A stretch of DNA of 64,000 nt from Mytilus trossulus (taxonomy: Eukaryota): the NCBI RefSeq assembly GCF_036588685.1, contig NC_086377.1, positions 29,264,001 through 29,328,000 of the forward strand, given 5' to 3'. Below the pieces are notes generated by a model that saw only the letters and a list, made by a program, of their open reading frames with translations, was not told the origin of the DNA and ran no database searches. Shown one piece after another: positions 2,030 through 44,700 of the stretch (positions are counted from its first letter, which is position 1; every line of letters begins with the position of its first letter). A program made the translations under genes and the position numbers.

Positions 2030-3091
2030 CTTTATCTCCTTGGGTGCCTTTGTTTCCTGTCATTCCTTTATCTCCTAACGTTCCCTTGTCTCCTTGTGTT
2101 CCTTTATCTCCTTGTATTCCTTTATCTCCTGCTGTCCCTGTGTCACCTTGTGTTCCTTTGTTTCCTGTCATTCCTTTATCACCTATTGTTCCTTTGTCTC
2201 CCTGTGTTCCCTTCATTCCTTTGACGCCTTTCATTCCTTGCATTCCTTTCATACCTTTATATCCCGTCTCTCCCTTCATTCCCTTTGCTCCTTTATCTCC
2301 TTGTGTTCCTTCTGTTCCAGCCACACCTTTGTCTCCTTGTGTTCCTTTTTCGCCAGTCATGCCTTTAACACCTTTCATACCCTGCATACCCTTCATTCCT
2401 TTATATCCTGTTTCACCTTTCATTCCCTTCGTTCCTGACTCTCCTGTTGCGCCTTTATCGCCCAAAGTACCCTTTTCTCCGGTCATTCCTTTGTCTCCTT
2501 GTGTTCCTTTGTCTCCTGATGTTCCTTTATTACCTGTCATTCCTTTGTCACCTTGTGTTCCCTTATCTCCCGTCGTTCCCTTATCGCCTTGGGTTCCTTT
2601 ATTACCTGTCATACCTTTATCTCCTTGTGTTCCTTTTTCTCCTTTCATGCCTTTGACACCTTTCATACCCTGCATACCTTTCATTCCTTTATATCCTGTT
2701 TCACCTTTCATTCCCTTCGTTCCTGTCTCTCCTGTTGCGCCTTTATCGCCCAAAGTACCCTTTTCTCCCGTCATTCCTTTGTCTCCCATTGTTCCTTTGT
2801 CACCATCAGTTCCTTTGTCTCCATCTGTTCCTTTTGATCCCTTCATTCCTTTGACACCTTTCATTCCCTGCATTCCTTTCATACCTTTATATCCCGTCTC
2901 TCCTTTCATTCCTTTAGCTCCTCTATCACCTATTGTTCCCTTTTCCCCAGTCATTCCTTTATCACCTTGAGTTCCCTTGTTTCCTGTCATTCCCTTATCG
3001 CCGGTTGTTCCCTTTTCTCCTATCATTCCTTTATCTCCCAATGTTCCCTTTTCTCCCTTATTTCCAGTCATTCCTTTATCTCCTTGCGTAC
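2030..3091 (-). CDS. Collagen exon 19 (1062 nt, 118 triplets)
   Basis: Acceptor TTTAG|GT ACG CAA; donor AAA G|GTAGTG; continuous Gly-X-Y with no Pro. Confidence 0.92.

Positions 3092-44700: not shown

Follow-up and report, generated by a model that had tools for sequence, protein, structure and literature searches.

The window analysed here is a stretch of 64,000 nucleotides from the mussel Mytilus trossulus (contig NC_086377.1, hereafter C5, positions C5:29264001-29328000). It holds the 5' part of what is best explained, as a whole, as one intact and selectively maintained gene for a secreted giant collagen, with at least 24 exons and a product that would be a structural homotrimeric helix; we give this reading a probability of about 0.7. 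The gene lies on the minus strand of an 88-Mb chromosome, covers about 54 kb (C5:29254230-29308700) and contains at least 23 GT-AG introns. Its coding length of about 20.5 kb is free of stops and frameshifts. It includes 22 exons made purely of Gly-X-Y, which amount to 2,279 uninterrupted triplets (6,837 residues, 673 kDa) with zero Gly substitutions, or to 2,282 triplets (6,846 residues) if the three triplets that close exon 2 are counted. By this unbroken register and by its matches to the Pfam Collagen family (PF01391, E = 1.5e-19 to 5.9e-102, on four of the four exons tested), the gene is a member of the collagen superfamily.

Scanning the window in six frames yields 16 blocks of perfect (G-X-Y)n without stops; all are on the minus strand and lie between positions 2022 and 38030. 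An A stands immediately before each block, and the opening G of the block thereby completes an AG acceptor. Such an acceptor is present at 16 of the 16 blocks in the window and at 22 of the 22 overall, which would occur by chance with a probability of about 0.33^22. At the other end, all 22 collagen exons carry a G/GT donor (the slash marking the exon end), GTAAGT, GTGAGA and GTATGT being frequent forms; position +3 holds a purine in all of them but one. This placement of acceptors and donors implies that every intron splits a Gly codon after its first base (phase 1). The collagen exons are 153-1,782 nucleotides long, each a multiple of 9 nucleotides, and all are of phase 1-1.

An earlier sequence-only reading of the window had described 16 exons, totalling 15,543 nucleotides and 1,726 triplets, spliced in frame behind a signal peptide. 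After trimming at the splice sites, the 16 exons span 2030-38029 and the 1,726 triplets stand, whereas the total is 15,534 nucleotides. The larger figure is obtained with an alternative in-frame acceptor of exon 3, 9 nucleotides upstream. Its pyrimidine tract is the better of the two; its use would add A-I-K and break the register once, with Ala in place of Gly. The same reading took the gene to be still open at the window edge, and six further Gly-X-Y exons do lie leftward: within the 60 kb examined on that side, exons 19-24 add 553 triplets with the same splice pattern, at C5:29254230-29263014. The features of the gene are as follows, in window positions except for the exons left of the window, which are given on L009.

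44855..44860, minus strand: possible TATA box (TATATA), a candidate read from the sequence, 155-160 nucleotides upstream of the start codon
44631..44700, minus strand: exon 1, coding part, 23 codons; ATG at 44700 within ACCATGG
42952..43071, minus strand: exon 2, 40 codons, phase 1-1; mature N-terminal head and first three triplets
37346..38029, minus strand: exon 3, 76 triplets; Pfam Collagen E = 3.8e-40
35337..36362, minus strand: exon 4, 114 triplets
33225..34322, minus strand: exon 5, 122 triplets
31059..31454, minus strand: exon 6, 44 triplets
28334..30061, minus strand: exon 7, 192 triplets
24171..25574, minus strand: exon 8, 156 triplets
22535..23164, minus strand: exon 9, 70 triplets
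20206..21339, minus strand: exon 10, 126 triplets
17318..17659, minus strand: exon 11, 38 triplets
12075..13856, minus strand: exon 12, 198 triplets, the largest exon, with eight Met/Lys/Tyr modules; Pfam Collagen E = 5.9e-102
11145..11486, minus strand: exon 13, 38 triplets; one of the exons tested against Pfam
9921..10640, minus strand: exon 14, 80 triplets
7884..8945, minus strand: exon 15, 118 triplets
5413..6474, minus strand: exon 16, 118 triplets
3297..4358, minus strand: exon 17, 118 triplets
2030..3091, minus strand: exon 18, 118 triplets; the leftmost exon within the window
L009:7953-9014, 5814-6875, 4967-5290, minus strand: exons 19-21, left of the window
L009:3454-4587, 2894-3046, 230-1471, minus strand: exons 22-24, left of the window

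The 5' end of the gene is of the secreted type. Exon 1 encodes a 19-residue signal-like stretch (MEWK, a hydrophobic core, then VHG) followed by LWTN, and ends with the phase 1 donor AACG/GTAATT. Judged by inspection, this N-terminus has the features of a secretory signal peptide, with V-H-G as a cleavage-type motif, and the chain is thus probably secreted. Exon 2 encodes a head of 36 residues, with one Cys, a His/Tyr cluster, four His and four N-x-S/T sequons, and without any Pfam match; the Gly-X-Y register opens at its end (G-L-K G-V-I G-T-Q). No further copy of exons 1 and 2 was found within the 124 kb examined. Since this single secretory start has no second copy, the 22 collagen exons cannot be divided among several small genes that would each have a signal peptide, and the earlier proposal of one gene behind one secreted-type 5' end holds. 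Intron 2 contains two satellites, at window 38863-40149 (89 bp, 14.5 copies) and 40243-40740 (83 bp, 6 copies), with 91-92% match.

Lysine makes up 19.3% of the residues of the helix region and fills 58% of its Y positions. Threonine follows with 12.2% (24% of X and 13% of Y positions) and methionine with 8.4% (25% of X), along with 8.4% Asp, 5.6% Gln and 1.3% Tyr; there is no Cys. Proline represents 0.6% of the residues (0.9% of X, 1.0% of Y), far from the imino content typical of animal collagens (proline plus hydroxyproline about 20%). This composition, the strangest property of the chain, had escaped the earlier reading. The net charge of the helix region is about +544. A 27-residue module, G[T/A]K GMK GET GYK GMK GMQ GMK GVK GMK, is present in 79 copies, its positions being 71-100% conserved (23 of the 27 at 90% or more). 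These modules account for 31% of the residues; they contain 25% Lys, 18% Met and one Tyr apiece, and carry a net charge of +446 in total. The spacers, in which GDK, GTQ, GMT and GEK dominate, are near-balanced in charge (+98 over 4,704 residues). The chain is a block copolymer of nearly invariant cationic modules and, between them, variable zwitterionic spacers. The modules follow one another at irregular distances of 12-58 triplets (median 28), with no D-period-like regularity.

The reading frame of this chain has been preserved for a long time. Pairwise differences between the 79 module copies are 4.7%, 4.5% and 36.5% at codon positions 1, 2 and 3, respectively, synonymous codons for Gly, Lys, Thr, Glu, Tyr, Gln and Val being used freely. 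This concentration of the divergence at third positions indicates that the protein is under selection. Comparison of the internal repeats likewise gives ratios of nonsynonymous to synonymous divergence (dN/dS) of 0.08-0.40, for dS values from 0.33 to more than 1. The Gly-X-Y frame is under long-standing purifying selection, and is neither a product of gene conversion nor a dead repeat. Selection and intact splice signals are equally strong across all exons, the most distal ones included.

A silent or recently dead locus, or an assembly artefact of a repetitive region, would yield no product at all, and the public annotations indeed hold no gene model here. We consider this very improbable, given 20.5 kb of coding sequence without stops or frameshifts, the contrast between third-position divergence (36.5%) and that of the other two positions (4.6%), and the low dN/dS values. 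The introns have only short transposon fragments in common. The six exons of 1,062 nucleotides are 55-71% identical pairwise, without gaps, and the best 540-nucleotide window between any two exons reaches 87% identity. Unique introns, together with the lack of any exon pair above 87%, show that the array is not an assembly expansion, an objection that the sequence-only reading had raised against itself and that fails here. The locus also appears single: in the 1.30-Gb, 541-contig assembly, matches of 73-91% protein identity are confined to it, and the next best (52-58%) fall in other collagen genes.

The triple helix was approached by modelling. Three copies of exon 18 residues 31-129, submitted to ESMFold2, gave an ipSAE of 0.46 (median run) versus 0.00 for the best of three controls. 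The reference mark of the method is reached by 21 of 30 solved homo-pairs and by none of 23 single chains. The partner pLDDT is 80-85 and the contact agreement between runs is at least 96%. Contacts are continuous along all 99 residues, in a staggered arrangement with i/i-1/i-2 offsets. The model thus supports a staggered trimer of the predicted chain. Provided that every exon is used and that the chain is helical, 6,846 residues at 0.286 nm each would give a rod of 1.96 µm. The earlier proposal of a micrometre rod in the size class of annelid cuticle collagens is borne out as far as calculated length goes; the rigid triple-helical rod itself is a prediction.

Relatives were sought with exons 12 and 3 in a library of 5.8 billion protein clusters, and with exon 12 in a second one of 1.84 billion representatives, without length limits. 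Neither library returned a close relative, only generic collagens at 32-53% identity; the queries being single exons, proteins that match only across exon junctions would escape. The matches are vertebrate collagens with VWA, FN3 or Kunitz domains, and phage- or giant-virus-like proteins. Those of highest identity (about 51%) are of the prokaryotic/viral compositional type, with GDK/GEK/GTQ-like triplets. The closest library item, at 65% over about 98 residues, is a 203-residue Logan fragment (P0296), which looks genomic. A sequence search of the PDB gave Gly-driven matches only. Since the libraries include the annotated proteins of M. trossulus, in addition to those of M. edulis, M. galloprovincialis, M. 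californianus and M. coruscus, and yet gave no close relative, the gene seems to be unannotated. An intronless HSP70 frame of the same genome is 100% identical to an NCBI protein of M. trossulus, 98% to proteins of M. edulis and M. galloprovincialis, and 95% to those of M. californianus and M. coruscus, so that the host is M. trossulus or something that cannot be told from it at this locus. A full-text search of the accessible literature with four motif strings of the chain retrieved no paper. The earlier impression that this is no characterised molluscan protein is thus upheld, neither the library nor the literature searches having turned up a characterised or annotated relative. The 'MGK-rich', 'LGDK-rich' and 'GYDK-rich' shell-matrix proteins of M. 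galloprovincialis (PMC4517812) were set aside, as their sequences are of the MMMPEMGGK type or unrelated.

Other collagen-like genes were encountered in the same genome. The nearest paralogues, at C5:28.28-28.32 Mb, were considered as a guide to the C-terminus and abandoned: they are VWA-collagens of ordinary length and gave no clue. They are two tandem genes on the minus strand (C5:28276672-28286770 and C5:28310067-28320456, on L018, L019, L030 and L033), each with 13 exons and about 360 triplets, low in proline, with VWA-like exons upstream; neither gene is related to the head of the giant gene. At C11:46.219-46.306 Mb, three (G-x-K)n frames of about 970-1,010 residues (L015:3071-6100, plus strand; L016:4144-7044, minus; L017:3199-6102, plus) contain 28-30% Lys, 7-9% Tyr and almost no proline. 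They make up a second proline-free, Lys/Tyr collagen-like family, which resembles the lysine plus tyrosine (3,4-dihydroxyphenylalanine, DOPA) chemistry of adhesives.

The 3' end of the gene was sought further left. No Gly-X-Y run of six triplets or more occurs on either strand in the 50 kb beyond the last collagen exon. On the minus strand, from this exon to window position -30,000 (20 kb further on), there is no run of three or more triplets, except one of 3 triplets that is antisense to the neighbouring gene. The last collagen exon ends with a consensus donor (CAG/GTAATA), which implies that at least one small exon is probably missing. If this donor were read through, the tail would consist of 7 residues, one of them Cys; poly(A) signals do not separate the options. 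The C-terminal domain that the earlier reading expected to the left did not appear, with no sign of COLFI, C1q, NC1, C4 or VWA. In a Pfam scan of 20 of the 57 minus-strand frames of at least 40 residues that lie between the last collagen exon and the convergent neighbour, no significant match and no collagen-associated one was obtained, although smaller exons, or exons in the other 37 frames, could escape such a scan. A candidate tail of 24 residues with a C-x-x-C motif, about 580 nucleotides downstream, was dropped, as it lies inside an inverted repeat resembling a miniature inverted-repeat transposable element (MITE). One arm of this small palindromic MITE-like element (L010:9540-9670, minus strand) looks like a strong acceptor with a 24-codon frame behind it, which makes the element a trap for gene models. 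The 3' side of the gene is bounded by a convergent plus-strand frame of 1,909 residues, which ends about 10.7 kb downstream. In this neighbour (L011:3777-9503, window -26223 to -20497), Q, N, P, H and T are abundant; it contains several families of internal repeats and a small cluster of Cys, and has no Pfam match.

Several points weigh against one giant gene with a homotrimeric product. As regards the gene, no trimerisation domain or terminal exon was identified downstream, and no gene model with the giant collagen sequence exists among the annotated proteins of the five Mytilus species, an absence that argues mildly against strong expression in the sampled tissues and may otherwise reflect repeat masking. 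A single mRNA carrying all exons is not supported, since phase 1-1 lets any subset of them splice in frame; symmetrical exons would allow skipped isoforms far shorter than 6,837 residues. As regards the helix, the fold model may merely recall the Gly-X-Y pattern from solved collagens. K-G-D/E pairs, the best documented of the stabilising ones, are depleted, involving 127 of the 1,316 Y-lysines versus about 403 expected. Together with 0.6% proline, this depletion makes helix stability doubtful and weakens a simple collagen-rod inference.

The first of these concerns leads to an alternative in which the gene is real and the giant product only a maximum, the exons being cassettes, of which the usual mRNAs would carry subsets and so encode a set of far shorter collagens. 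The symmetry of the array speaks for it, as 22 of 22 exons are in phase and multiples of 9 nucleotides, and so do the repeated classes of exon sizes and module layouts (six exons of 118 triplets, for example). The lack of a full-length model in the annotated proteomes searched points the same way. Yet selection is equally strong on all exons and their splice signals are all intact, none being marked as optional, and we regard this alternative as unlikely, while taking it seriously.

The second concern leads to a secreted chain without a stable triple helix, namely a flexible glycine-rich polycation forming a coacervate, an adhesive or a mucus-like matrix. In that case something else would have to preserve the Gly-X-Y register, for instance modifying enzymes that recognise X-Lys-Gly. 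Such a chain would be consistent with the scarcity of proline and the threefold depletion of K-G-D/E pairs. It would also agree with the net charge of about +544 and the Lys and Tyr of the conserved module, which together are typical of the chemistry of mussel adhesives. The proline-free, Tyr-rich (G-x-K)n family on C11 is another argument in its favour. Against it, the zero Gly substitutions in 2,279 triplets are hard to explain without close packing of three chains, and a staggered trimer is modelled with confidence from three copies (0.46 versus 0.00 for the best control). Proline-poor collagen-like proteins of prokaryotes and viruses are moreover known, and such proteins were among the library matches. 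A flexible polycation looks unlikely.

Coming back to the homotrimeric helix, we infer trimerisation, modifications, rod length and a structural role along the following lines. Three identical chains would form a one-residue-staggered triple helix about 2 µm long, a homotrimer being the likeliest form since there is no close paralogue. The helix may be held by lysine-acid pairs, and probably by glycosylation of hydroxylysine or threonine, instead of proline and hydroxyproline, in a cold-water animal. Lysyl hydroxylases use the X-Lys-Gly context, in which every Y-lysine stands here, so that heavy hydroxylation and glycosylation are plausible. Lysine-acid pairs at i+5 are enriched, with 615 of the 1,316 Y-lysines versus about 403 expected. 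Pairs from i to i+2 bridge the leading to the middle and the middle to the trailing chain, and those from i to i+5 the trailing to the leading chain (PMC11923368). The sequence avoids the classical K-G-D/E clamp and is enriched in the i+5 one. The Met/Lys/Tyr modules would serve an extracellular structural fibre or tether as recurrent sites for cross-linking or ligand binding. A role in byssus, periostracum, mucus or cuticle, as suggested by the earlier reading, gained no support. In its strongest form, a full 24-exon transcript would give a near-proline-free homotrimer of about 2 µm and 2 MDa with non-hydroxyproline stabilisation, a tentative proposal for which the odds are somewhat unfavourable. 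Stabilisation would come from glycosylated threonine or hydroxylysine, from Lys-Asp bridges at i+5 and perhaps, inside the modules, from covalent links that are either Met-Lys (sulfilimine-type) or derived from Lys/Tyr.

Comparison with known collagens places the gene in neither the fibrillar, the preCol nor the prokaryotic group, because the defining features of each were looked for and are lacking. Fibrillar collagens have about 338 triplets and 54-bp-type exons that open with an intact Gly codon, whereas the giant gene has 2,279 triplets and split Gly codons; its helix is 6.7 times the fibrillar length and nearly free of proline. Non-fibrillar collagen genes have introns of this Gly-splitting kind. 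The vertebrate collagens (types I, VI, VII, XII and XXI) share the Pfam repeat and give the top sequence matches, at 36-46% identity, but have COLFI, VWA, FN3 or Kunitz domains, none of which was seen here.

Mussel preCols are secreted collagens with histidine-containing ends (PMC11766948). The giant gene resembles them (preCol-D, -P and -NG) in being from a mussel, in its predicted secretion and in the histidine near its end. In contrast, preCols have a short core with silk-, elastin- or polyglycine-like flanks, whereas such flanks are absent here and proline is near zero, the helix being more than 10 times longer than the preCol core. The sequence-only reading had made the same point about the flanks, and indeed only the 36-residue head precedes the helix.

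The likeness to prokaryotic and viral collagens (Scl1/Scl2, BclA, phage tail-fibre and giant-virus proteins) is compositional only, and consists of proline-poor, charge-rich Gly-X-Y. Bacterial collagen-like chains reach about 6,000 residues (PMC11923368). The giant gene differs from this group by its animal chromosome, its eukaryotic-type signal peptide and at least 23 spliceosomal introns splitting Gly codons, and no phage or cell-wall-anchor domain was found in its Pfam-scanned exons.

The annelid cuticle collagens (of Riftia, Alvinella and Nereis, among others) are the nearest analogues in behaviour, the proline-poor prokaryotic and viral proteins being a second one. Rotary shadowing has shown annelid helices of up to about 2.4 µm. 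The annelid compositions are unusual, one-third glycine being almost the sole common feature, and in Riftia stability is given by threonine glycosylation and not by hydroxyproline (PMC11766948, PMC2443231). The likeness lies in the calculated length (1.96 µm here, if the chain is helical), odd composition and 12% Thr. They belong to another phylum, however, and have globular end domains, whereas none was found for the mussel gene. The high Met/Lys content and the 79 invariant modules of the mussel gene are not known from descriptions of the annelid proteins.

In length and chemistry, the predicted protein is unlike any collagen in the libraries and papers searched and, judged from its sequence, appears to be an extreme variant of the family. 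The rules of collagen stability and length derive from proline/hydroxyproline-rich helices of about 1,000 residues. A selected series of 2,279 flawless triplets with 0.6% proline would mean either a hydroxyproline-independent micrometre helix or a novel function for the Gly-X-Y register. Should the product be a rod, the giant collagens, so far seen only in worm-cuticle micrographs, would have their first full primary structure, and this would be the first completely sequenced micrometre-class animal collagen. For mussel-inspired materials, the chain would be of interest as a block copolymer designed by nature, its 79 cationic Met/Lys/Tyr sites being set on a scaffold that could measure 2 µm. 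The gene also points to a blind spot of annotation: it is in no Mytilus proteome searched and would be nearly invisible to tryptic proteomics, a predicted digest leaving 90% of the helix in peptides of six residues or less (69 of 1,341 peptides have seven or more). Short reads cannot resolve 79 near-identical modules, which is a possible reason why it was missed.

Some other features of the window and of the assembly were recorded. Two degenerate 24-bp satellites, at window 53536-54187 and 55217-56176 (27-28 copies, 71-75% match), generate spurious frames on both strands. A dispersed repeat of about 930 bp, partly tandem, at window 45176-46106, is found at more than 100 other genome sites on many chromosomes, with 86-89% identity. 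The assembly also has many separate mitochondrial contigs with COX1, including C53, C73, C78 and dozens more.

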